From Lytechinus pictus (Eukaryota), in assembly GCF_037042905.1 (NCBI RefSeq), contig NC_087246.1:47616001-47680000 (forward strand): a stretch of 64,000 nucleotides of DNA. The letters run 5' to 3'. Every line of letters begins with the position of its first letter. The stretch's first letter is position 1. The position numbers and the translations under genes are program-made. The notes below the pieces were generated by a model. The model was not told the DNA's origin and ran no database searches. It saw only the letters and a list, made by a program, of their open reading frames with translations. Shown one piece after another: positions 11,401 through 56,995 of the stretch.

Positions 11401-13682
11401 AGCCCCTTTTACACCTTCACGGATCATCCCGGATTGTCAATCCGGGATCATCCGTGTACAGTCCGGGACTACCGTGTACACACCGGCTACTCATCTTGCG
11501 CCATCCTTGATGTACCGGCATATCCGGGAGAAAAATTGAACAAGTCAAATTTTTCATCCTGGAGTACACGGACGGATAATCATCTGTGTTTATCCTTATC
11601 CGTGTAGCTGCCGAATGCATCCGGGAGGTCCTTGTTAATGCCGGTGTCATAGCCGAATTGGTCCAGGCATTCGAATACTAGCAGAACTAATCGGCGGCTC
11701 TTTTACACGCCGATTCGTTCTGGATTTTGTAGGGTGGTGCAATCTTCATAGCCGATTTGTTCTGACCAGGCGATTTGTTCTGATCCGCCATTAACACCCC
11801 TATATCAAAATGTGATATTCGAATCAACCATTTTCAACCAATAATTTGCTCCTTCAAATCAACCACACCCACAGAACAGACACAGCTGCCGATTTGAAAA
11901 TCTTGTAACGGGAATTTACGAAATATTTTAACAAGTACTCTTTAATTCCTGCTTCCAAGTGATTAAACAATGGAGGACAGCTGTGTGGAGCCAAGCCCTA
12001 TTCAAAGTGCTCCCTTTGTGCGCCTGTGCTATTGGGGGAAGCGATATGAATTTCAACTTTGATATAATTATCCAACAGGGCTGGCTTGTACGTCTATAGG
12101 TCTTCATTACTCATGCAATAAATGGGATGAGATTGGCGATTGGGGCGATGGGGGTGTGCTCATCAAAACCCCAAAAGTAGAAATAAGAATAAATATTTTG
12201 AATAAATAAATAAATGAATAAAAATATAAAGAAATTAAAAGACCTGATTAAGCCCAACAATTTGTGGTGCTAAAAGCACAGGGAACTGTCATTGACANNN
12301 NNNNNNNNNNNNNNNNNNNNNNNNNNNNNNNNNNNNNNNNNNNNNNNNNNNNNNNNNNNNNNNNNNNNNNNNNNNNNNNNNNNNNNNNNNNNNNNNNNNN
12401 NNNNNNNNNNNNNNNNNNNNNNNNNNNNGGAAAGGGTCTTTTACCTCCTTGGGAGAATAATACGAATACGTTTCAGATAATTATAGCAATACTAGAAAAA
12501 AACAAGAATAATGAAAAAAGTGCATCTTATTCAGCCCCCTAAAATAATGATATAATAGTAGCCTAATAATAACAATATAAATAATAGTGATATTAATAGG
12601 GCCTACATGTAGTAGTAATGATGACAATACTAATAATGATAGTAATAGTAATAATGATAATGACATTAATGATAACAATAATAATGATAATAATAATAAT
12701 ATTCAGTACTTTGCACCCCGGGAGCCCGACCTGATATTGGCTCAACCGTGACACGTGCGAAAAAAAAATCATTCTTGTACGAGGCTGAATACCTAATTTC
12801 TAAAACATTATAAAATGAATAATGTAATTCATAAGTTCTATGATAATATTGAAATTACATAAAATAAATTACACCAAGATATATTTTAACACATTTATCA
12901 AAGTAAATAATTATACTATTACCTTCGAAAATTTTGACAAATGTGGAACCAAACGGCTGCTCTCCTTTCGTATCGGCCAAAATTTAAGCCAGTTATTTGG
13001 ATCTGGCAGGCCCGATCGACTAACCGTTTTGGTACTGGCGGGACTAATCAGCTAGCCGTTTTGGGTCATCGACCCCCGGTTCCATTCGGCGACCCCACCG
13101 GCTATTTCCGGGTCGAATATTGTCCATTGTTTACGTACATGAATAATAGTCTGTTTTCATGGTCATGTTTGAGTACGCTACAGACGTTGCAAAAAGGGAA
13201 AGAAACTTCAATCTTGGCCAATGTTCTAGAGATATCCCAATAGAGACCGTAAGCAACCATGAAGGTCCGTGAAAGGACCCACTACATCCGTGTATTCCGT
13301 GCTGACTCCCGGTAGCTTATCAAGTAGAACCCTAATGCTATCTTTTCTATCCTTGTAGGAACAGCACTTTTCAGTACATTTCCATGTAAATACCCAGTTA
13401 AATCCGTATTCACTCCGGCAATGGTAGAAAAAATATCAACTTGGAACCCGGATCAACACGGACTTAGATCCGTGTTGCATCCTTGAAGGTGTACAAGGGA
13501 CTTAGTGCTACCTTTTCTATCCTTGTAGAAACAGCACTTTTCAGTACATTTCCATGTAAATACCCAGTTAAATCCGTCTTCACTCCGGCAATGGTAGAAA
13601 AAATATCAACTTGGAACCCGGATCACCACGGACTTAGATCCGTGATGATCCTGGTTGCATCCTTGAAGGTGTAAAAGGGGCT
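11401..13682. mobile_element. PIF/Harbinger-like non-autonomous element with nested insertions and duplicated right end
   Basis: 19-bp TIR agccccttttacaccttca / tgaaggtgtaaaaggggct. 170-bp tandem duplication at 13336-13505 and 13506-13682. Confidence 0.75.
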
Positions 13683-30700: not shown

Positions 30701-32378
30701 ACAACGAGGAAATAATAATTTATTAAAAGGACATATTTTGAGAAATATTGATTCAACATTCAACGAATACCAATGCATATATAAGCTTCTTGTATTATAG
30801 CTTAATTTACTACTGAATAATCTAAGTTGGCTAAATTACATTTTGATATTTCAAACCTTTTTCTCACTTTTTGATCAGATTTTAAAGATCCTTTCAGTAT
30901 TTGACGGTAATGCATTGATTAGACATTCCGTCTTGTTACTGCAGTATATCCATAAATTACTTATTACTACGAAATACATAATCATTCTAATTTCGTTGTT
31001 AGTTTCCAATACTAGTAGATATAAAATATAGTAAAGATAGAAATAGTTCCATTGATAGACATTCTAGTTGGATTTTCTCGAATGATTATTTTCCCGTCAA
31101 TCTGGAAATGGAAGGAAATAAACAGTTATCTCCACGTTCAATTTAAAATAGTCTTTATTGTCTCCTTTTACTGTTTTTTTTTCATAATGCAGATTTTTCC
31201 CGGACTCTATCGGCTCTGTCTGAAGCCATTAAATTTTTTTTCGAATAATACTCATTTGAATATGGGAATTTTATTTTGTCTATAATCTATTGTACTAAAA
31301 TACATGTACTTCTATTTTATCCCATATCCAATGTGGCAAGCAATCCTGTGAATATAAAAACATAATTCATTCTTGATTAATCTAATCTAACAATTCTAAA
31401 TAAAGAATATGATTCTTATGTCAAGTACAAGTAAATAAATAATAACTAATACGACAGGGGAAAAGATACCATTTCTATCTTTCAATTGGTCACAAGATGT
31501 TGGCCTAAATTGTAAGATCAAATCTAAACAGCGGAATTTCATCGAAAAGGGACGTTTCTGATATGAGGTCCAACTAAATAATCATAAAATAAATGTTGTT
31601 CAATAGCAGGCAAGTAGTTCGTAATAAATGTGTTTTAATCCGAAACCAAATCTGATACTGAATATGCCAGTTACAAAATAAGTTTAATGGTTAAAACACA
31701 TAAATCACCCTGAAAATCGTCAAGGGTCATTTGTGAGATAAGCCAAGACTACAAAAAGAGAACACAACCATAAATGGCAGATAATTGAATGCATAATGAA
31801 CTCGATATGTACATTACATAAAAATGCAGATGACGATATTCTGACATCAGTATTGTGATTCCCACGGGAGGAAGTGCAGTAAAAGAGTCTGGTAGAATAC
31901 AATTCATGTGTCAATGAGCATGGGATAAGAACTTGTATGTCGGATTATTTCGTCATTTTAATTGGTAAGATCACAATCATCATTTTCCATCTTGTCGATA
32001 GAAGCAATGCCTAACTTTCTTCCACGTGGAATCCTACATGATTAATTGTAAGTATTGAGTAGGTCGTGATTGCTTTGATATGAAGCGAGACTCTGTCAAA
32101 TCTTTAATGATGGACTTAATTTGTTCTTGATTACAATTCAATTGTGAACTCTTTGGACAATCACTAATATCAATGTTTATTCTCATTTGGCACTAGCGAA
32201 ATTTATGATATCCCTTTTTATTGTTTATGTGTTCGAAGCTTTTTGGAATAATCAGGTAATTATTTTATACAGAGAATCCAAAAATACCAACAAAACTGTT
32301 TAAAAAACCTTAGAGTAAAGAGATTACAAGGTTTTCACAAATTTATACAAGAGCGAGTGCCATTTCATTCCAGGTATA

Positions 32379-32575
32379 TCATACTGAATATGAATGACTT
32401 AATGAAGACGTTTTTTCTAGGATGCTCATTAATCTTGATTCCGAGCGCCCTATTTTACTGGCGCTGTGGAATCTGCTGCGTACATCGACTTCGTGTAGGA
32501 GAGGAATGCCGATATCACCTGGAACTCGTCGACCGAATCGTGGAGGATGGCCCAATGGTCGTGATGGCCTTCGAT
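32379..32575 (-). CDS. Putative neuropeptide precursor, last coding exon (RFamide: ...RRPSRPLGHPPRF-G-RR)
   Basis: Strong acceptor ttttcgtattctttatcatacAG (32576-32577), phase 1 compatible with exon 1. Encodes (N)RRPSRPLGHPPRFGRRVPGDIGIPLLHEV...SYSV*. AATAAA on the minus strand at about 32217-32222 and 32176-32181. Confidence 0.75.
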
Positions 32576-33602
32576 CTGTATGATAAAGAATACGAAAATG
32601 GAACACATTTGATAATTTGGTAAGTAAGACTTTCACACCCTAAACTAAAGACCGATTTACGGGATATGAGCGTATAGGCTTCGCTTAATGCATATAAATA
32701 CATAAATAAATATGTATCATGTTTATCATGTGTAAAAAAGAGGCTGGGCTATACAGGGGCATGGGCGACACCCCCTTCCTTCACTCTCCCTGGTGATTCA
32801 AGAGGAGACTAAGATGAATGCCACGGTTATTCAATTAAAAAATATAATGATGTTACTTTTTGGTCATCTTGCACCAAGATGTTTGATCATGTACGTCAAT
32901 TTCTTTTAGAAATAACCCCGGAGACATCTTAAAGGCCTAACGCTAAACGGGTATTTCTGTACAATAAGCCAGTTCGTAGTTCCTTTCTGCGCATGATCAA
33001 AAGATTCTACGCATGATCAGAGGAAGGTCATTTGTACTAAAGTGACATGGTGGTTTAAACTCTAATGAGATAAGCACCAACTTTGATGTCTTGATCATTC
33101 ATATATTATTTTGAATTGTGGTTTTCATTTACATCCACCGAAAAACAACAATGCGTCCACGAACGACTGGTATTTCACAGTTTGCTAAGTACATTGTGCA
33201 ACATGCTATGATATGCATTCAAAGTAGGAATGCAACAAATAGGCCTACTTTCATAAAGTGATCATTGGTGTGCTATTCTAATCACCCGGTCTATTCAATT
33301 TTTTCATCCTGCTATGTAAGGCAAGCTTACGTATATTTTGCTTTGAAATCTGCCTATCATAATGAAAGAAATGAAAGGTAATTTGACCAAAATTGTCCAT
33401 GAAGTAACTATGAACTGGTCTATGCCTTTAAGGTATAGTGACAGTGCATGAGGCACATTAAGAGAGGCGAAATGATGACTATATTTGTTTTGAATATCAG
33501 ATTGATGTGCAATTTTAATCTGAGATATGTCAACATTAACAAATCCACTCGAAGGCGACGCTCTGATCAGGGATAGGTTGGTCTTTTGGAATAAAGTCAC
33601 TC

Positions 33603-33900
33603 TTGACGAGGACCTTACGCTCCTCATCGTCCAATCTCTTACAAATTCCAGTTGCTAAGAAATCATGCGGGGAACGGGCCTTTGATCATGCAGGGCCTAA
33701 CCTGTGGAATTCTCTTCCACAGAGTTTGAAAACTCAGACTTCAGCGACCTCCTTCAAGGGCAACCTGAAAGCATACCTGTTTAAGAGTGCTTTTTGATAG
33801 ACATTGACTTATTGTTCAGACATTTATTATATGTTAATAGCTTTTGTTGTTGTTCTGCGCTGAATCGCCTCGAGCATCTAATCAAGATGGAAAGTGCGCT
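33603..33900 (+). mobile_element. L2 LINE 3' fragment (intronic)
   Basis: RTLRSSSSNLLQIP...GERAFDHAGPNLWNSLPQSLKTQTSATSFKGNLKAYLF*, a typical L2 ORF2 C-terminus, then a short UTR and a masked tail. Confidence 0.85.
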
Positions 33901-34986
33901 NNNNNNNNNNNNNNNNNNNNNNNNNNNNNNNNNNNNNNNNNNNNNNNNNNNNNNNNNNNNNNNNNNNNNNNNNNNNNNNNNNNNNNNNNNNNNNNNNNNN
34001 NNNNNNNNNNNNNNNNNNNNNNNNNNNNNNNNNNNNNNNNNNNNNNNNNNNNNNNNAGCTGACTGGTTGTTACAAATCCAGATGGTGCGAGGAAAGAAAA
34101 GGTAATTGTAATCAAAGCTGTTGATACTGCGTACTGGAGGTACAATTAAGAGATACAGTAGGTCTGAATACATCGGCAAGAGTCCCCGAGACTTATCTTG
34201 TCTTGGCCAGTGTACAATGAAGATGTCCTTAGTCATAGCGACCAATCAAAACTACGCGAATCAATTCTACGCCACCCTTTGCTGACGATAGAGTGAAAAG
34301 TGATTATCCAAAGACCCGGTTATACTGTGCTTGAAGCATTGTTTATGATTCAAAGTTTCAGATCGAAGATGTACATATTTATTATCCGAGAATGCATCGG
34401 AGTTCGCGTGCAGGGTCCCGTCAACTGTTGCAGACGTAATTTAAGGAAGCTCGTTCCAAGTTGTATGCATGTACTTCTTGCCCGATTAAATAAAGTAGCC
34501 CTCTTTTCCTGCACAGGTAAATGGCAGTCAATGGCAACCTACGTGGCATATGTCTTCTGGCTATCGACGACATGGATAGGATTGACTGATTGTTGAACTT
34601 GCCGATGAATGTGATGCATGTTAGATAATTTTCGCCGATCCACTTTAGCTCTAAAGATGGAGCAAAATCCAATTTAAAAAATTGCAGTTTATGAAAATCA
34701 AGCGGAATGCGGCAAGTTTAGGATTTCCCCCAGATTGAAAAAGCAATAGAGTTGTCAAACATTCCAGGAAAGATGCAGGCGTATGTGTAGCTCATTGTTT
34801 AATCTTAACCTTGTCAATGACTTTCCACGGCTAACTACATGGCACGTTAGAGATTTAGAATAAAAACATAGAATGGGTTTTGCTGGTATAAAAATGTTTA
34901 ATACTCACAATGACAGAGGTAAAAATGAAACATGTCGTTACGTGTAAACTATATTGTTTAGAGATGTAACATAACTGATTTCTTAC

Positions 34987-35170
34987 TTGTGGTAGTACTT
35001 GACTGACTCCTTTTCAGGCTACCAACTTTGCAAAGGTTATTGGTGTAAAAAGGTATGTAGTTTCGCCAACAGAGATGGTGGTTGCCTTGGCAACGCGTTG
35101 GAGGAAGTACACTAGCAACAACCATCACACACAGGCTCAATGTAAGGGCGGTGCGTTGTGAAAAATTCAT
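34987..35170 (-). CDS. Putative neuropeptide precursor, coding exon 1 (signal peptide + pGlu/2-Cys peptide + KR)
   Basis: Acceptor ttttttttgttcaatttccAG directly before ATG at 35170. Encodes MNFSQRTALTLSLCVMVVASVLPPTRC|QGNHHLCWRNYIPFYTNNLCKVGSL-KR-SQSSTTT. Ends in phase 1 at donor acaa|GTAAGA (34986). Confidence 0.75.
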
Positions 35171-35635
35171 CTGGAAATTGAACAAAAAAAAGGTATTATG
35201 GTTAGAACCTAATGAGAAAACACAACATGGTTTGTTTGCTGCTTTGGGGGTCGAAGGTAATAATACTAAAATCAACATTATGAATATGTACTATATAATC
35301 AAGGAGTGAATATCACAGTGATGGTCAAATTGTATGTGAATGTTAAAAATTAGATATAAAACCTGTTAATTATCTTATTATAAGTCGTGGCAAAGCGTAA
35401 AAGCATGCTGTATGAAATACTAATAACTTAAGTAAAACTTGGAGGAAAAATTTGGTACAATGCTAAAATGAAGGATGAAAATTAATTCGCAGTTGAAATT
35501 TAAGCTAGATTTAAGCTAAAGTAAAAATGAAGATTAAGGTGGTATTAGGTAATGAAAAATTAAGATGAGAAAAAGAACGTTGGAAGATAATCATTGATAA
35601 AGCAAGGCTTTAATCAATCGAAAGGGAAGATAAGT

Positions 35636-35797
35636 CCTGGGCTCCGTAACAAAGGTTCGCGATGAATTGCAAGTATGAAATACCCGCACTGATTGGTTCC
35701 CAGTCAGTATTTTAAACAGAGAGCGCGTGCAACGACGATCTGATTGGTCATTGGTATTTAGCGATTGATTGCAAACATTCGTGTTACGGAACCCAGG
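35636..35797. mobile_element. MITE (gggctccgtaac termini)
   Basis: cctgggctccgtaac / gttacggaacccagg. Inverted copy at 52095-52253. Confidence 0.8.
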
Positions 35798-36819
35798 TAA
35801 TATCCATCCAATGAAGTCATTATTAAGCGATTCTGACTAGTGATTCTAACTGTCTAAGAGAGAAATGTTCAAACTGTTCAAGTTCAAGCCTTTGGACGTA
35901 CTTTCCATTATCATTAAATCTTTCAAGTATAATGTAAATCTATCTTTTAAAATGCTTTAGGAAATCAATTGATTTGTTGTCGACAATTTATCCACCTTCT
36001 TAGTGTACAAGATTAAGGTGCACAGACAATACATGTAAGTACTTTACTTTGGTAATAACATAAGCGTGCATCGACAGCAAAGATTCCAAAATCCTTTCTT
36101 TATTTTGCGGCATTATTCGGGTCTGTTTGAAGTAAATTAATGCTTTTCTATTTAACATGTGTGACGTTCTTTTTCATTGCTTTACGTCGACACGAACCTT
36201 TAAAAACGAACGGTATAAACTTGAACACTTAATTATCTCCTTGACAGTGCTTCTTTGGAATAGGCTAAAAGTAGGTTAATATTCATCTAGCATGAGATTG
36301 ATATTCTCCACATCAAGTTGAAAGGTACATTCTTTTATTTATTAACAAATCTATTTCAATACTACACGCAACCCTCGAAGTTTGGGAATGTAGATCGGGT
36401 TACCCAGTAAATAAAAGATCAGTTGCTCCCATTTTATTTATTCTTAGATTCTGGTCTTAGGCCTATGGGATTCTTTCCAAAGAAGTGACTTAAAGTTGCT
36501 CACACGAGGAAATTATTATAAAACAGAAAATATCTTCAATTTCATTCCAATCATACGAGAGACTTCACATGCTTAATGGATATCTTAGTATTCAATAATA
36601 AATCAATAAAGAAGAAGAAGAAGAACTGTTGCTTTTAATAGATGTGTTATTTCAGCTTGCATAAATCCTCAAGTATTCAAATATTATAACCCAAATCCAT
36701 ATGAATATGTAATAGTATATTTGCACAGTCTACCTTTCACAGGTTTTAATAGGTATTAAGTACCATAATGATTATTGGTTTTGGATTTGTTTTTTTCTCC
36801 GTTCAATTCGAATGCGAAT

Positions 36820-39090
36820 TCAAGTTTATTTATTTATCCTAAAAAGAATCAATAAGAAAATAGAACGAAGTTAACAATTATACATTTCATATCATTTTAG
36901 TTCTATTTCCAACATTTACATTTTTATGTCCAATAATACAGATATGTAAGCGATGAAAGGAAAGCAAATTTCTACGTACAAAAATTATATATAGCTACAA
37001 TTATCACATTAGCAGGTTGGAGATGGAGGAGACTGCTAAAAGCAGGAGCTTGTAGGGTGCAGCCTCCAAATAAAATTATTCTTGTAAAAAGTATATAGAC
37101 AAAAAATACCCCACAAAATTACAACTTGGGCATAAAACCAGGTAAAAGTAGAAATTTGGAAAATAAAGATTAAAATAGAAATAGAAAATGATAAAGAGAG
37201 AGATGTAAAGGCCTCTTGCCCCCGGCACTCACAACGGATCCCGTTGATCAACAGGAATTTACAGGGAAACGAAGGGAATGCATATAGATAAGGGTATCCA
37301 TGTTAATTTAAAAAAAAGTATAAGAGTTAAATCAATTAGTGATTATTTTTGAAAAACTTTTTTATTTAATTTTAAAAGAGTTTAAGCTTGCGGATTCTTT
37401 GATGTTATTAATAGTGCCCCAGAGCCTATAGGGCCTTCGAAAGTAAATATTGATTTTGCAAGGATGGTCCAGGGTAGTGGTAAATGAAATTCATCAGATT
37501 GACCCGTGGGATATTAGTGAAACAACTTTGTTTTTTATAAAACTAATATTGCGCGAAATTTTACGACAAATAGATTCAATAAGTGTTTTCCAAGATAATT
37601 TGTTGTCTATTATGAGACCTACAAATGTTGCAACAACTTCAGTATCAATTTTATCCAATTTGATATTGAATGGTAAATGTTCTAAAGAATTGCTAAAAGC
37701 ATACAATTTTTTTTTTGGGGGGGGGGGGTTGTACATTAATTGACAATTTGTTAGCCCTTATCCATTGTGCCAACCTATCCAGTTCAATGTTCAATACATT
37801 CACCAAAATATCAGGAGGATGAGAATAAAGTACATTTGAATCGTCTGTGAAAAAAGGATAAAAGATAATATTTTAGAAGAGTTCTGGATGTCATTTATAT
37901 AGACTATAAATAAAAGTGTGCCCAGTAGGCTTGCTTGGGTAACACCCTAATTACATTTTGTAGAGAAGAATTTCTGCTCATTTACGCTTACACATAATTA
38001 TTTGTTACGATTTGTGAGGTAGTTTCTAAACCACACCAAGGCCATCCACGAATTCCGTAATTCTCAAGTTTATATAGAAGTATTTTATGATTTATAGTGT
38101 CAAAGGCCTTGAAGAGGTCTAGAAAAACACACCTATGTATGTTCACAATTGTGAAAAGCTTTTGCGATAGTTTTCAACAAATGAGAGAGAAAAGCGTGAG
38201 ATGTATGTTTTTGGCGAAATCCAAACTGAAAATCAGAAATATTTATTCAAGATATTTGATAATGTTGTATAGATCACCCTTTCCATAACTTTAGATAAAG
38301 TAGGTAATAAAGATATTGGTCTATAGTTACAAACATTATTCTATTCGCCTTTTTTGTGCACTGGTCTTATCTTGGATATTTTCATATTGTCTGGCACTAC
38401 ATCATTTCTTAAAGAAAGATTAAATGTGTACAGTAATAAGTTTTCAACCCCCAAAAAAGGATTCCTTACCAGAAAAAATTTTGACAAGCCAAAAAAAAAA
38501 AAAAAAAAAAAAGGCCTTCAGGTTCAAAAGAGGGGGTACACATCTGTCCCCTGTATCAATTGTGACTCGTCAGGGGGGCAGTCTGCCCCCCCCCCCCCCA
38601 TAGGTACGCTAGTGGCCCACAGCTCTTTATTTTTTTAAGTTGTTCATTGTATCTATTATTACATTCCTATGTACTGGCACTAGAAATAGAGATTTCGGGT
38701 TTGGTTGGTGAATAAGTCAGTACATTTTTTGTGTGTGAACGGTATATTTCGGCAAGATTTTTCTTATTTGTAAAAGGTCTTGGTTAAAAATATCAGCTAT
38801 ACGGAAAGAGTCATAAATTCGACATTTATCATGTTTTATTGATATTGTTCTTGAAACGAATTAATTAGTTTTTAAGTATTTCCGTTTTTCACTACGTAAT
38901 AATTTGGTGAGAGTATTTGTATTTATTATTTATATGCGATGAGACTTCTCTGAACTTCCCTGATTAATTTTATCTGCATTGTATAGATTGTTTTTGCGAT
39001 TTATTGATCGTAATATTGATTTCGATATCCAAGGAATTTTTGGACTTTTTTTAGCAGGTGTTTTTGCATTTATTTATGATTTCAATATAT
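36820..39090 (-). pseudogene. Degenerate L2/CR1-group LINE ORF2 (reverse transcriptase) and 3' UTR
   Basis: Minus fragments PWISKSILRSINRKN; [28 protein letters not shown]; GVTQASLLGTLLFIVYIND; TDDS; WIRANKLSINV; FVGLIIDNKLSWK. Interrupted by a hAT-like MITE at about 38440-38614. Confidence 0.9.
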
Positions 39091-42096: not shown

Positions 42097-45000
42097 ATGA
42101 CAAAGTGCCAGATTTGAGGTGCTCTAAGTTTGTTTCGGGTTGCTGTTTTTTTTTAACAAATAATTTAATTTATTTTCATATTTTTTGCTAAGTGACTTTA
42201 AATCAATTTAGTAAAATCATCTTCAAATCATTGTATAGAATTATTGGTGGTAGTTTGAAACGAGTATGAAATAAGTTGAAACTATGGTGTTTAGTGCCGA
42301 GTTCACTTTTCACAGAGGCTACGGATTGTTATCTATCACATAAACTAAATCATTAGAATCTAGCCCCTCCCCACCAATAGATTCGCACCATTTTGGCAGC
42401 TCCCATGCAGTAGAATTTTGTAAATTGTTTCATTTTGTCTTTAAATGACCACTGATCGAAAAGGACTCCCTTTGGGATCGTTAGCTATTTTGCACAAGAG
42501 TTTCCACGTAAGACTCAGTAATAGCATAACAGTTTCTGACTGTATTCTTCAGTTCAAGAATACAATTTCACATTCATTTTTGTGGTTTTGTATCCATGAA
42601 TTTGAATTTGCGGCTGTTATCGCATAATCTAGATGGAGGCAAGGAGATGGCATTCATCTAGCGAAATCATGTAACCATCCTGATTTGTAAATGCGAGCCC
42701 CTGGAATAGAGGAAGGGGTTAAGGGGTAAGTTAAACAAAAAAAAATTGTCAATGCGAATCCCCTTTTCTTAATTATAAATTCCCTGCCCTCATCACTATC
42801 AGTGAAAAAATATTGTTTCAAGGGACAAGCGTAGCAGTTCATAATACACCATTTATTTCAGATAAGACTGAATTTAAAATTTGCAATTACAACGATTCTA
42901 CACCCTTAAGAGATCTCTTCCATATTAAAAAGAAATTGCATTAATATAATATTCATCTATTTCTGGAAGGGGACTAACATAAGAATTTTACAGTGTTAAT
43001 ATCAAAATTGTTCTGATTGATCATGCAGTTACTAAAACTGTAGTTATTTTTCTAACTTGATTTCTTTTTCTTCGGTGATTTATCTAAAGCCTGGTAAATA
43101 TGGAGGTTGGTAACAATAATTGATATTATTAAAGAGAAATGTAAAGAAAATAACCCCCTCCCCTCGTTTTTCCCCAATATAAACTTAAAAAATAGAATAA
43201 CATCGAAAGTGACTATGGAAATATGTATCAACCAAATTAGGTTTTCAGTATATTATGTTTGATTTTTAAGCATTCACAAACTACAGCCTTTTATCATAAT
43301 TCAGCTCCCGATATTGTTCAAAATATTGATAATAATTTGAGAACAACTGGTTGTGGGGAAATGCCTAACATATACCATCGTAATTATTTAGTTTTCGTGG
43401 AAATGCTCATCAATATTGCCTGTATAAATATCCTTGAAAATTTACCACATGAAAATCATATTTCATTCATTTCTGGGCGAGGGGATTTTACGTGACGTTG
43501 GATAAAAAAAACCCTTAAAATATTTTATATAAGTATGTGTAAAATAAAGAGAACTTAAACGGAAAGAATGATAAATTCAATTGATATTGAAGGCGAAAAG
43601 GGACCTTTCTAGCAAACAGTGTCAAACTTCCATCTAGTGAATTAAATTACTTTCTGCTAAAGTCCGTTCGATAAGTGATTTTCTTTGATGAGTACACTAC
43701 CCTTGGCTAGAAGGAAAGGTCGCAGACACAAACACATATTATTACAGGGAAACAAAGGTTGCAAGCCTGCAGTAAAAAAAAATGTAAGAAGAACATATAT
43801 TCATTTTACGACTTACAAAACAAGAGGTATTAAGGAATATTTTCATTGTAATTGTTTGCTTATTATTTTGATGCAGTAGAGTCTGATATTACGGGTATAC
43901 ATAACGAGCTTTCCGGGGTTGAAACTTCATTTATTTCAGAAAATACTCGTGAGCCCCTTCTCCCCTTCCATTAAAAAGCTATTTGTTCCATGTGCAGATG
44001 TGCATGTCACAGAAAACACCTGAACCAGTTGTTGATCAGATGAAAGGCAAACCAAAACCCAGATTGTGGATCAAGTAGGTGGCTCTCATCATTTTCATTC
44101 GGATACTTGAGGCCACTTTGAGATCCACGACTGCCATGGCTATATTATGTTGGTCTTTCCGGCGGTGTTTTGTTCAGTAAACCTATCGGGTTGTAAACTG
44201 TGGTTACAAGTCATGTGGGTTGATAGTGCTTAACGGAAAAGCATCAGGTGAATGGTTCAAGGAAGGTAACGCCATATGAGACTGGTTTGAGAGAAGAGGA
44301 CAAATTATGTTTTCATGCAATCGAATTTGTCTTCATGTTATACGAAACGGACCCTGCCTAGTAGTAGCACTACACACTAAGAAATAAATGTTAATGTTTG
44401 CACCCTATAAAGCATTGACAGCACCATGTAGAGTGTAATATTGCACCTTAATTGGAAAAAGGTGCATTTGTGCACCTTTTGGTTGTTATTTTGTACTGAG
44501 TGTGGGCAGGGAGGGGAAGAATGTACCTTTCTGTATTGATGTAAAAATATAAATGACGTATAGGGGTATGTGTATATGTTTATTGCCTACATGTGAGGTA
44601 TTTNNNNNNNNNNNNNNNNNNNNNNNNNNNNNNNNNNNNNNNNNNNNNNNNNNNNNNNNNNNNNNNNNNNNNNNNNNNNNNNNNNNNNNNNNNNNNNNNN
44701 NNNNNNNNNNNNNNNNNNNNNNNNNNNNNNNNNNNNNNNNNNNNNNNNNNNNNNNNNNNNNNNNTTTTACATGCAGCTTAAGGTACGTTGTCGTAAGAGG
44801 TGTATTATTGTTATCTCGGTCATGTCGGTAGAGAAGAGAGATTGTGCGAGAGGAAAATAGACAGAAAGACAGAGAAAGCGTACTTGTTTTGCTTTTGTAT
44901 ACGTCCCAGGGAAAATAAGTCAATTTATATTTTTTATTTAGAGATTATTCAAGACCTATTTCATTTCTTTCATGCAATTCATGGCAGCAAAGGTAAGAAT

Positions 45001-45129: not shown

Positions 45130-45630
45130 TGTGTAGTTGCAGTAGTNNNNNNNNNNNNNNNNNNNNNNNNNNNNNNNNNNNNNNNNNNNNNNNNNNNNNN
45201 NNNNNNNNNNNNNNNNNNNNNNNNNNNNNNNNNNNNNNNNNNNNNNNNNNNNNNNNNNNNNNNNNNNNNNNNNNNNNNNNNNNNNNNNNNNNNNNNNNNN
45301 NNNNNNNNNNNNNNNNNNNNNNNNNNNNNNNNNNNNNNNNNNNNNNNNNNNNNNNNNNNNNNNNNNNNNNNNNNNNNNNNNNNNNNNNNNNNNNNNNNNN
45401 NNNNNNNNNNNNNNNGTAGCAGTATAAGTAGTAGTAGTAGTAGTAGAAGTAGTAGTAGTATAGTAGTAGTATAGTANNNNNNNNNNNNNNNNNNNNNNNN
45501 NNNNNNNNNNNNNNNNNNNNNNNNNNNNNNNNNNNNNNNNNNNNNNNNNNNNNNNNNNNNNNNNNNNNNNNNNNNNNNNNNNNNNNNNNNNNNNNNNNNN
45601 NNNNNNNNNNNNNNNNNNNNNNNNTAGTAG
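45130..45630. repeat. (GTA)n microsatellite, mostly masked as N
   Basis: gtagtagta sequence flanks and separates the two N runs. Confidence 0.8.
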
Positions 45631-56300: not shown

Positions 56301-56687
56301 TGCAAACCGTGGGCTGGGCCATAAGAAATACTACTAAGTTTCCTCCCCTTTAAATATTATTTCAAATATCAGGAACTAGCAGCCATATCGATTCACTTTA
56401 TAGTACAGATTTTGTTTAGGGGGGTCATTATACGAATCGGTCATCGCAGAATTCATTCAACATTAATTAGCGGACGTGGTGGACAAGTGTGGGCAGAGTA
56501 TAATTATCATTTCATTGACAACTGCGTGCTCAAAAAGACAATGAAATAGTCGCTCTTATGAATAATATATGTGAATTGATAAAGTATTTATCCAATCGTT
56601 AAAACAAATGAAATGGCCCAAGTTATGAACAATGGTGAACATAATCAAGATAAAGGTATCGGTATTTTTTTACGTAATAATAATAAT

Positions 56688-56688
56688 A

Positions 56689-56753
<65 letters not shown>
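56688..56753. repeat. (GAT)n microsatellite
   Basis: About 21 perfect units; source of the poly-His ORF. Confidence 0.95.
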
Positions 56754-56767
56754 AATGTTGTTGATAA

Positions 56768-56995
56768 TACACTCTAAAAAAATGAGTTAAATATATTAAC
56801 CCAATATTGGGTAGAAAGGGAATATGCCTCTTTACTGTGTACCTTTCCCCGATATTGGGCAAAATGCATGTGTTAGGGGTAAATTTCAGCACAACATTGC
56901 GTTAAATTTACAGAGTATTTGGTATCGTTTTACCAAGACCAAACATGCATGTCCCCATTTTACCCAGTATTGGATAAACTCTGTTTTAGAGTGTA
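56768..56995. mobile_element. TA-flanked MITE inserted in a trinucleotide tract
   Basis: tacactctaaaa / ttttagagtgta; ccc(a/g)atattggg palindromes. Confidence 0.8.

Follow-up and report, generated by a model that had tools for sequence, protein, structure and literature searches.

A spliced sea-urchin gene, absent from the annotation, predicted to encode an orphan amidated RFamide precursor

A real, spliced and expressed sea-urchin gene that is absent from the annotation lies on the minus strand of the window analyzed here (64,000 nt of the Lytechinus pictus genome). Its likely product is the precursor of an amidated RFamide, an orphan neuropeptide or hormone rather than a PrRP/sNPF orthologue. 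Joining 35170-34987 (exon A, 184 nt) to 32575-32379 (exon B, 197 nt) yields 126 codons plus a stop (381 nt); the join, its GT-AG borders, its phase 1 and the 126-residue ORF had been claimed in the original prediction, and our translation is identical to the string given there. The donor reads CAA/GTAAGA, and at the acceptor a pyrimidine tract precedes CAG/AT; the intron splits the codon for Asn62 after its first base (A/AT). Features of the locus are listed in Table 1.

Table 1. Features of the locus (positions within the 64,000-nt window).
Feature	Position	Strand	Basis
3' splice acceptor (T-rich tract + CAG) adjoining the start codon	35171..35200	-	sequence; X6 and X1 contig alignments stop at 35172
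Codons 1-27: ATG and predicted signal peptide (R6 in n-region, hydrophobic core residues 7-21, c-region PPTRC)	35090..35170	-	translation
25-residue N-terminal segment QGNHHLCWRNYIPFYTNNLCKVGSL	35015..35089	-	translation
Lys-Arg dibasic cleavage site, codons 53-54	35009..35014	-	translation
Beginning of predicted RFamide peptide, 7 1/3 codons closing coding exon 1 (SQSSTTT + first base of Asn)	34987..35008	-	sequence; junction in RNA contigs
Phase-1 intron GT..AG, nominally 2411 nt	32576..34986	-	joint in contigs; zero depth on unique parts
Remainder of predicted peptide, (N)RRPSRPLGHPPRF	32535..32575	-	translation
Gly-Arg-Arg, amidation donor and dibasic site, codons 76-78	32526..32534	-	translation
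48-residue C-terminal tail and stop (32381-32379)	32379..32525	-	translation
3' UTR	32013..32378	-	AATAAA at 32222-32217 and 32181-32176

One check proposed for this hidden gene model was a search for reads across the 34987/32575 junction, and the exact junction is present in assembled contigs of two sequencing runs: X6 and X7 each supply a single such contig (1391 nt at depth 12.7 and 483 nt at depth 7.9, respectively). Both runs are from a closely related organism (organism B), while X1 is from the window's own organism; all three are presumed to be RNA, the label being a guess. X1 contigs terminate at these exon borders as well. The exons are covered, and in X1, X6 and X7 the unique parts of the intron have a depth of zero. 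The joint skips 2411 nt, bounded by CT..AC on the plus strand and thus by GT..AG on the minus strand. A high-copy interspersed repeat occupies approximately 32960-33425 within the intron (copies of the repeat were found), and an assembly gap (33901-34056) is wholly intronic and therefore leaves the reading frame unaffected; since in RNA one exon continues straight into the other, the gap makes only the length of the intron uncertain. A 154-residue ORF and others that run across the gap were rejected as artefacts of N being read as X.

Expression is limited to few samples. The gene is present in four runs of one study and in 1 of 3 runs of another, while none of the sampled words occurs in 14 other runs of organism B. 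Raw reads of an additional RNA-seq run (X10, 1.9 Gb) contain zero exon reads, a null result that reflects restricted expression or low depth and is no proof of silence.

The original prediction described a two-exon gene. This holds for the coding part, but the strong acceptor immediately before the ATG, together with 88 extra 5' nt on the X6 contig that have no placement within 35173-37900, points to one or more additional exons, non-coding and located 5' of the two coding exons. The 126 codons are counted from the ATG of exon A, and there may be a further in-frame start within the 88-nt 5' part. Downstream, the transcript follows the genome without interruption between 32575 and 32013, and the C-terminal coding part has no further intron. 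Poly(A) signals had been placed 160-200 nt past the stop, and AATAAA is indeed found 157 and 198 nt beyond it. Coverage by X7 stops near 32163; the X6 contig extends about 535 nt past 32013, and the 3' UTR can reach well past both signals.

The elements anticipated for a secreted precursor (a hydrophobic, putative signal sequence, Lys-Arg and Gly-Arg-Arg) all appear in the translation. The N-terminus has an n/h/c layout with a Kyte-Doolittle 9-mer maximum of 2.89 and small residues at -3/-1 before Gln28, from which signal-peptide cleavage is predicted after Cys27 (-3/-1 rule). The following segment, QGNHHLCWRNYIPFYTNNLCKVGSL, begins with Gln and contains two Cys 12 residues apart; the Cys pair could form a disulphide and the Gln a pyroglutamate. 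A 21-residue stretch ending in PRF is then bracketed by KR (53-54) and G-RR (76-78), which is the general layout of precursors of amidated peptides, and the 48-residue tail has no dibasic sites.

Standard prohormone biochemistry suggests how the product of this single-copy gene (at least one non-coding 5' exon and two coding exons) would mature. After removal of the signal peptide from the 126-residue prepropeptide, most likely behind Cys27, prohormone convertases would cut at Lys53-Arg54 and Arg77-Arg78, a carboxypeptidase would trim the basic residues, and peptidylglycine alpha-amidating monooxygenase would convert Gly76 to the amide. These steps would yield SQSSTTTNRRPSRPLGHPPRF-NH2, a 21-residue peptide with a monoisotopic mass of 2377.25 Da. 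Both internal basic sites of the peptide (RR, and the R after PS, Arg67) have Pro next, so cleavage at either would be disfavoured. The 11-residue amide named as an alternative in the original prediction would have a mass of 1258.70 Da. A second predicted product is the 25-residue two-Cys segment (2957.39 Da with pyroGlu and disulphide), which is equally conserved and may also be bioactive. The amidated RFamide would most likely act on a G-protein-coupled receptor, as a neuropeptide or hormone.

Comparison with organism B gave 5 synonymous and 5 replacement changes in the coding sequence, corresponding to a pN/pS of about 0.32 (based on 10 of 11 differences, with one exon 1 difference left out). 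Residues 28-90 carry 3 synonymous and 0 replacement changes; within them, the two-Cys segment has three synonymous and zero replacement differences, and the exon B part of the peptide is identical. The tail carries three replacement changes (V91I, F97I and T117A) and is changing faster than the rest of the precursor. The 3' UTR is 5.7% divergent, with indels, compared to about 2.9% for the coding sequence. The divergence between the two organisms (pS about 0.055) is close to the level of within-species polymorphism in sea urchins. No orthologue was seen beyond this one close relative, and conservation of PRF-GRR refers to the organism B comparison only.

We consider it very improbable that the locus is a spliced non-coding RNA, or an untranslated ORF with precursor-like features that arose by chance. 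Very many windows were screened, so a chance RFG-basic-basic motif beside a hydrophobic ORF start is to be expected somewhere, and the low depth (about 8-13) and the lack of a homologue among 1.8 billion representatives would also fit such a locus. The ORF, however, is 126 codons long against a mean of 60 in shuffled transcripts, and ORFs of at least 126 codons occur in only 0.7% of Markov-shuffled transcripts of the same composition (P about 0.007). Its start lies 3 nt inside the exon and opens a putative signal sequence of classic n/h/c type, residues 28-90 show synonymous changes only, and the sites for cleavage and amidation are placed precisely around the RF end. The motif RFG[KR][KR] occurs once across the six frames of the window.

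Searches for relatives agree with the original prediction that the precursor is not a described sequence. A protein word-index search with each coding exon within its open frame (proteins of 47-192 residues qualifying) returned no candidate; none of the stored proteins has three 5-residue words in common with one or the other exon. Neither coding exon matched a Pfam family, the top score in the ESM Atlas was 0.79 with no family, and a full-text literature search by peptide fragments and amide names recovered no similar echinoderm sequence. Searching for the accession of the described sea-urchin PrRP-like protein brought up unrelated papers only. When 1.84 billion representatives were searched exhaustively with exon 2 in HMMER, there was one match (P0001), which was rejected as spurious because this 827-residue sequence is a translated tandem repeat whose score comes from seven weak repeated stretches. 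In its own genome the gene is single copy and has no paralogue; the best non-self match to exon 1 (E = 0.026) lies over the hydrophobic part.

The predicted 21-mer, a Pro- and Arg-rich sequence, is strongly cationic, with a pI of 12 and a charge of +3.5. These properties would also suit a secreted non-neuronal peptide, for example an amidated one with an antimicrobial or immune function in coelomocytes. Antimicrobial peptide precursors also undergo amidation and dibasic processing, and sample-restricted expression is consistent with such a role. Yet the Pfam, ESM Atlas and HMMER searches revealed no likeness to known antimicrobial families, the gene is single copy while immune peptide genes often form families, and the peptide is unchanged between the two organisms as the tail varies, whereas immune effectors usually change fast. 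A non-neuronal role of this kind is quite unlikely.

Resemblance to PrRP/sNPF-type precursors, also raised in the original prediction, consists of the phase of the intron, the length of the peptide and its RF-GRR end, and does not support family membership (RF vs. RY, a spacer, an Asn vs. a Gly codon, and negligible identity to the starfish peptide ArPrRP). As in PrRP-type precursors, a single long amidated peptide ending in Arg-Phe or Arg-Tyr is followed by a basic site and a C-terminal tail, and the stretch coding for the peptide is split by a phase-1 intron while the C-terminal part is intronless. Human PrRP ends in RPVGRF-GRR. The 21 residues and RF-G-RR end of the predicted peptide are within the 20-31 residues and RF/RY-amide ends of PrRP-type peptides (vertebrate PrRPs have 20-31 residues and echinoderm PrRP-like peptides 22-25; PMC7314547). 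The likeness goes no further, since the described urchin peptide (S. purpuratus PrRP-like, XP_001176371.1; eLife 2020, PMC7314547) is an RYamide directly after the signal peptide, with a phase-1 intron in a Gly codon at the peptide centre; here an RFamide is predicted, and the intron is in an Asn codon at peptide residue 8. Our gene differs from the described one in end, position and intron codon, and identity of the two was rejected on the basis of the published description. Generally, echinoderm and chordate PrRP precursors have the peptide directly after the signal peptide (PMC7314547), unlike the present one, where a 25-residue two-Cys segment and KR intervene.

The gene could alternatively be a second, divergent echinoid PrRP/sNPF-type gene, a paralogue of the RYamide gene, with its RFamide acting on the sNPF/PrRP-type receptor; we regard this as unlikely. 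Its single 21-residue RF-amide peptide, near the vertebrate length range, does have a phase-1 intron in its N-terminal third and a C-terminal coding part without intron, both of which define PrRP-type genes, and there is a precedent in the two PrRP-like genes of Saccoglossus; the RF-GRR of the human precursor and the PRF-NH2 end of ArPrRP are likewise shared. Aligned from the C-terminus, though, ArPrRP and the 21-mer match at 5 of 21 positions, 3 of which are that PRF end, and equivalents of the residues conserved among echinoderm PrRPs (Lys5, Gln17 and Arg19 in AmPrRP numbering) are missing. The peptide is not signal-adjacent, and sequence searches give no link to any protein. Intron phase alone is weak evidence, as phase-1 introns also occur in kisspeptin-type precursor genes.

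An orphan RFamide precursor, the reading that we prefer, bears on receptors as well as on annotation. Catalogues of echinoderm neuropeptides serve the reconstruction of how bilaterian peptide signalling evolved, and several sea-urchin RFamide-family receptors are still without ligands; QRFP-type receptors, for instance, were reported in S. purpuratus with no known ligand (PMC4062910), and no later claim of a ligand for them was found in the literature searched. Nor does the echinoderm neuropeptide literature searched describe a sea-urchin peptide with an RFamide end. The precursor was missed by annotation and by all sequence searches, and it now provides a concrete synthetic peptide for those receptors; that small spliced peptide genes are still hidden even in a chromosome-level assembly is a further implication. 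The predicted peptide, which matches no described neuropeptide, could be the ligand of an orphan receptor. Tentatively, and with considerable doubt, the 21-mer RFamide, or the looped 48-residue peptide in full, may be the endogenous ligand of a ligand-less urchin receptor (QRFP-type or of the expanded kisspeptin type), or else a second ligand of the sNPF/PrRP-type receptor. If so, a new RFamide signalling system would be added to echinoderms.

Three other known systems share parts of the layout. The first peptide of the kisspeptin-type precursor KPP1 carries a pair of Cys near its N-terminus and ends in an amidated aromatic residue, and the same arrangement would result here if KR53-54 were left uncut, giving a 48-residue looped RFamide. 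KPP1 also has two coding exons and a phase-1 intron. In echinoderm KPP1, however, that intron separates the signal-peptide exon from one exon with all peptides (BMC Biol 2022, PMC9400282), whereas here the first coding exon also carries the Cys segment, KR and 7 peptide residues, and the intron is inside the peptide. Both KPP1 and KPP2 are already known from sea urchins, and no sequence match was found.

QRFP-type peptides (26RFa/43RFa) are also long RFamides ending in RF-G-R-R. Chordate QRFP occupies the extreme C-terminal end of the precursor and terminates in F-x-F-R-F; here the peptide is central, with 48 residues after G-RR, and ends in H-P-P-R-F. Of the conserved positions in the amphioxus QRFP-like peptides (Leu4, Ala8, Lys18 and Gly20; PMC4062910), the 21-mer shares only the Gly six residues from the end.

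Finally, luqin-type precursors are comparable in being short and in combining one amidated Arg-aromatic peptide with a Cys pair elsewhere. In echinoderm luqin precursors, the single amidated peptide follows the signal peptide and ends in RWamide, and the Cys pair is in the C-terminal tail, whereas the Cys pair described here is N-terminal to the peptide.

Joined, the two minus-strand coding exons yield 381 nt, i.e., 126 codons and a TGA stop, and their translation is identical to the string proposed in the original prediction of a hidden RFamide precursor. The intron is in phase 1, splitting an Asn codon behind its first base. Three transcript contig sets, X1 from the window's own organism and X6 and X7 from a close relative (organism B), were aligned to 32000-37900 together with a raw RNA-seq run (X10). 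The predicted splice junction is present in X6 and X7: the joint 32575->34987, which reads CT..AC on the plus strand and thus GT..AG on the minus, occurs in one X6 contig (1391 nt, depth 12.7) and one X7 contig (483 nt, depth 7.9). All three contig sets cover the exons but leave unique parts of the intron (32591-32787 and 33970-34954) bare, so they behave as transcriptomes, their 'RNA' label being a guess. X1 matches the window sequence at every covered site where X6 and X7 differ from it, and its contigs end at exon edges, 35172 and 32579 (the latter with one mismatch and 13 loose letters, as expected from the end of exon 1 at that point); the same spliced RNA is therefore most likely made in Lytechinus pictus. 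As the assembly gap lies inside the intron, it has no effect on the reading frame; it leaves just the intron length uncertain, and the exon pairing is settled by RNA. ORFs crossing this gap, in which N is translated as X, were discarded as artefacts. The 64-kb window contains no obvious coding exons besides those of the precursor.

Features of the precursor gene, its predicted product and the surrounding window
Feature	Position	Strand	Remarks
Coding exon 1	35170-34987	minus	184 nt; ATG at start, CAA|GTAAGA at end
Intron	32576-34986	minus	nominally 2411 nt; contains unread stretch 33901-34056
Coding exon 2	32575-32379	minus	197 nt; preceded by pyrimidine tract + CAG
Predicted signal peptide	residues 1-27		short n-region with Arg6; hydrophobic core 7-21; then PPTRC, small residues at -3 and -1
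Cys segment	residues 28-52		QGNHHLCWRNYIPFYTNNLCKVGSL; Gln at N-terminus, two Cys separated by 12 residues
Dibasic site	residues 53-54		Lys-Arg
Predicted RFamide 21-mer	residues 55-75		SQSSTTTNRRPSRPLGHPPRF
Amidation and cleavage site	residues 76-78		Gly-Arg-Arg
Tail	residues 79-126		48 residues, without dibasic pair
Intronic interspersed repeat	32960-33425		~460 bp; wider repeat-covered zone 32788-33969
Upstream repeated element	35546-35939		23-nt inverted repeat 35629-35651 / 35782-35804
Further assembly gaps	12298-12428, 44604-44764, 45147-45415, 45477-45624		
Microsatellite	56623-56892	minus	~24 His codons, then Tyr codons

The proposal of a two-exon gene holds for the coding exons but not for the exon total. 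Bases 89-274 of the X6 contig align to 35172-34987 and bases 275-856 to 32575-32013, while 88 nt of its 5' end fall outside 35173-37900. A strong acceptor (T-rich tract, CAG|ATG) adjoins the start codon, which together with the unplaced 5' bases indicates at least one upstream non-coding exon and thus at least three exons overall. At the 3' end, the anticipated polyadenylation signals (AATAAA) lie 157 and 198 nt downstream of the stop. X7 coverage (window 32163-32282) stops ~13 nt beyond the second, whereas the X6 contig reads through and continues ~535 nt past 32013 (3' UTR of at least 900 nt); the difference may reflect alternative polyadenylation, and the proximal signals mark at most one of several ends.

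In established prohormone biochemistry, a Gly just ahead of a dibasic site marks a peptide for C-terminal amidation, in which a convertase cuts at dibasic sites, a carboxypeptidase trims the basic residues and PAM amidates the C-terminal Gly. In the candidate precursor these steps would act on the dibasic sites either side of the 21-mer and on the Gly that follows it; the motif RFG[KR][KR] occurs once across the six frames of the window. The hydrophobic core reaches a Kyte-Doolittle maximum of 2.89, and the predicted signal-peptide cut after Cys27 would leave an even number of cysteines, with a cut after Ser20 as a possible alternative. Pro after a basic site disfavors convertase cleavage and directly follows both internal basic sites (Arg63-Arg64 and Arg67), so the predicted product is most likely the uncut 21-mer amide (2377.25 Da), with the 11-mer PSRPLGHPPRF-NH2 (1258.70 Da) as the alternative. 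The Pro/Arg-rich composition of the 21-mer and its pI of 12 would also suit a secreted peptide with a non-neuronal role, which we consider unlikely; on the best reading the gene probably encodes the precursor of an amidated RFamide that serves as a neuropeptide or hormone.

Could the ORF have arisen by chance in a non-coding transcript? Its length, a signal sequence that begins right where the exon does, and the excess of synonymous changes between organisms make this unlikely. In Markov shuffles of a transcript of the same composition, the longest ORF averages 60 codons and an ORF of at least 126 codons appears in 0.7%. Between organism B (X6 and X7 contigs) and the window, 11 coding sites differ. 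The 10 listed comprise five synonymous differences (Pro24, Asn30, Tyr38, Gly50, Thr117) and five replacements (signal peptide: C14G and A19V; tail: V91I, F97I and T117A), with pN/pS ~0.32 over the whole coding sequence. Residues 28-90, which run from the Cys segment through KR, the predicted RFamide peptide and G-RR into the tail as far as its 12th residue, carry three synonymous and zero replacement changes. The 3' UTR diverges by 5.7% plus 23 gapped letters, compared with ~2.9% in the coding sequence. Such a pattern would be expected for a translated precursor in which the peptides matter and the tail does not, although the test is weak because the numbers are small and the organisms very close (pS ~0.055).

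All four listed runs of study P3 (organism B) contain partial exon 2 and 3' UTR sequence, as does one run out of three in study P1 (the window's organism); none of the sampled words is present in fourteen other runs of organism B, and X10 (1.9 Gb) has zero exon reads. Such patchiness would be expected if expression were confined to particular cell types, tissues or stages.

As the original prediction had supposed, the sequence does not correspond to a described one in protein, family or full-text searches. Word-index protein searches turned up no candidate for either exon, each queried within its open frame; Pfam has no family for the product, the ESM Atlas has no match above 0.79, and none of the papers searched in full text contains fragments of the peptide. 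Neither exon has a second copy in the genome (811.7 Mb in 368 contigs). The 126-residue protein is absent from a collection of 15 billion proteins; the gene is thus unannotated in this genome and, within the searches made, in all others, and we are highly confident that it is both real and hidden. An exhaustive HMMER search of 1.84 billion representatives with exon 2 returned nothing but P0001, which was rejected as a homolog. This 827-residue 'protein' is a translated tandem repeat of ~70 residues that reaches E = 3e-9 against the 64-residue query purely by summing seven weak stretches, a trap for short queries.

The suggested resemblance to PrRP/sNPF-type precursors extends to a single long R[FY]-amide peptide and a phase-1 intron within the peptide-coding sequence with none further downstream, but fails for peptide position, features of the urchin ortholog and conserved residues. 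Echinoderm and chordate PrRP peptides directly follow the signal peptide (PMC7314547), whereas here 25 residues and KR intervene. The S. purpuratus PrRP-like peptide (XP_001176371.1) has an RYamide end and an intron that splits a Gly codon mid-peptide (PMC7314547), in contrast to the RFamide end and the Asn split at peptide residue 8 of our gene. The peptide lacks the residues that echinoderm PrRPs are reported to share, and identity to the starfish peptide ArPrRP is 5/21, three of these being the PRF end. The gene is therefore not the known PrRP-like ortholog, and membership in the PrRP/sNPF type is not supported and appears unlikely; it is at most a divergent PrRP paralog (Saccoglossus has two PrRP-like genes). 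Echinoderm kisspeptin-type KPP1 genes share a phase-1 intron, but theirs separates an exon for the signal peptide from one for the peptides (PMC9400282) rather than lying inside the peptide. Genes of the KPP1 type are already known in sea urchins. Chordate QRFP forms the very last part of its precursor and has an F-x-F-R-F end, neither of which is true of the peptide described here. The appeal of the QRFP type is that QRFP-type receptors of S. purpuratus have been reported with no ligand known for them (PMC4062910); a search of the available literature gave no later claim. NPFF/GnIH-type receptors are reported absent from S. purpuratus (PMC4062910). From these comparisons we file the gene as an orphan RFamide precursor; its value is a defined peptide for testing on orphan echinoderm receptors.

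Elsewhere in the window, the three gaps near 44.6-45.6 kb are set in simple sequence of low GC content (0.27) with Thr/Tyr/Ser codon runs when translated, and the minus-strand microsatellite is accompanied by no other sign of a gene. The intronic repeat has 1856 candidates in the genome at first look; the best 39 other copies by score are spread over many chromosomes and are 94-95% identical. Its depth is 10^3-10^4 in transcript contigs and ~1000x on both strands in raw RNA reads, and the copies resemble a SINE/MITE-like family that is young and transcribed. The second repeated element, upstream of the ATG exon, is also deeply covered by contigs; in 48 raw RNA reads, position 35688 is joined to 35771 on opposite strands, its inverted repeat is 83% complementary, and the element is of a hairpin-forming or foldback type.
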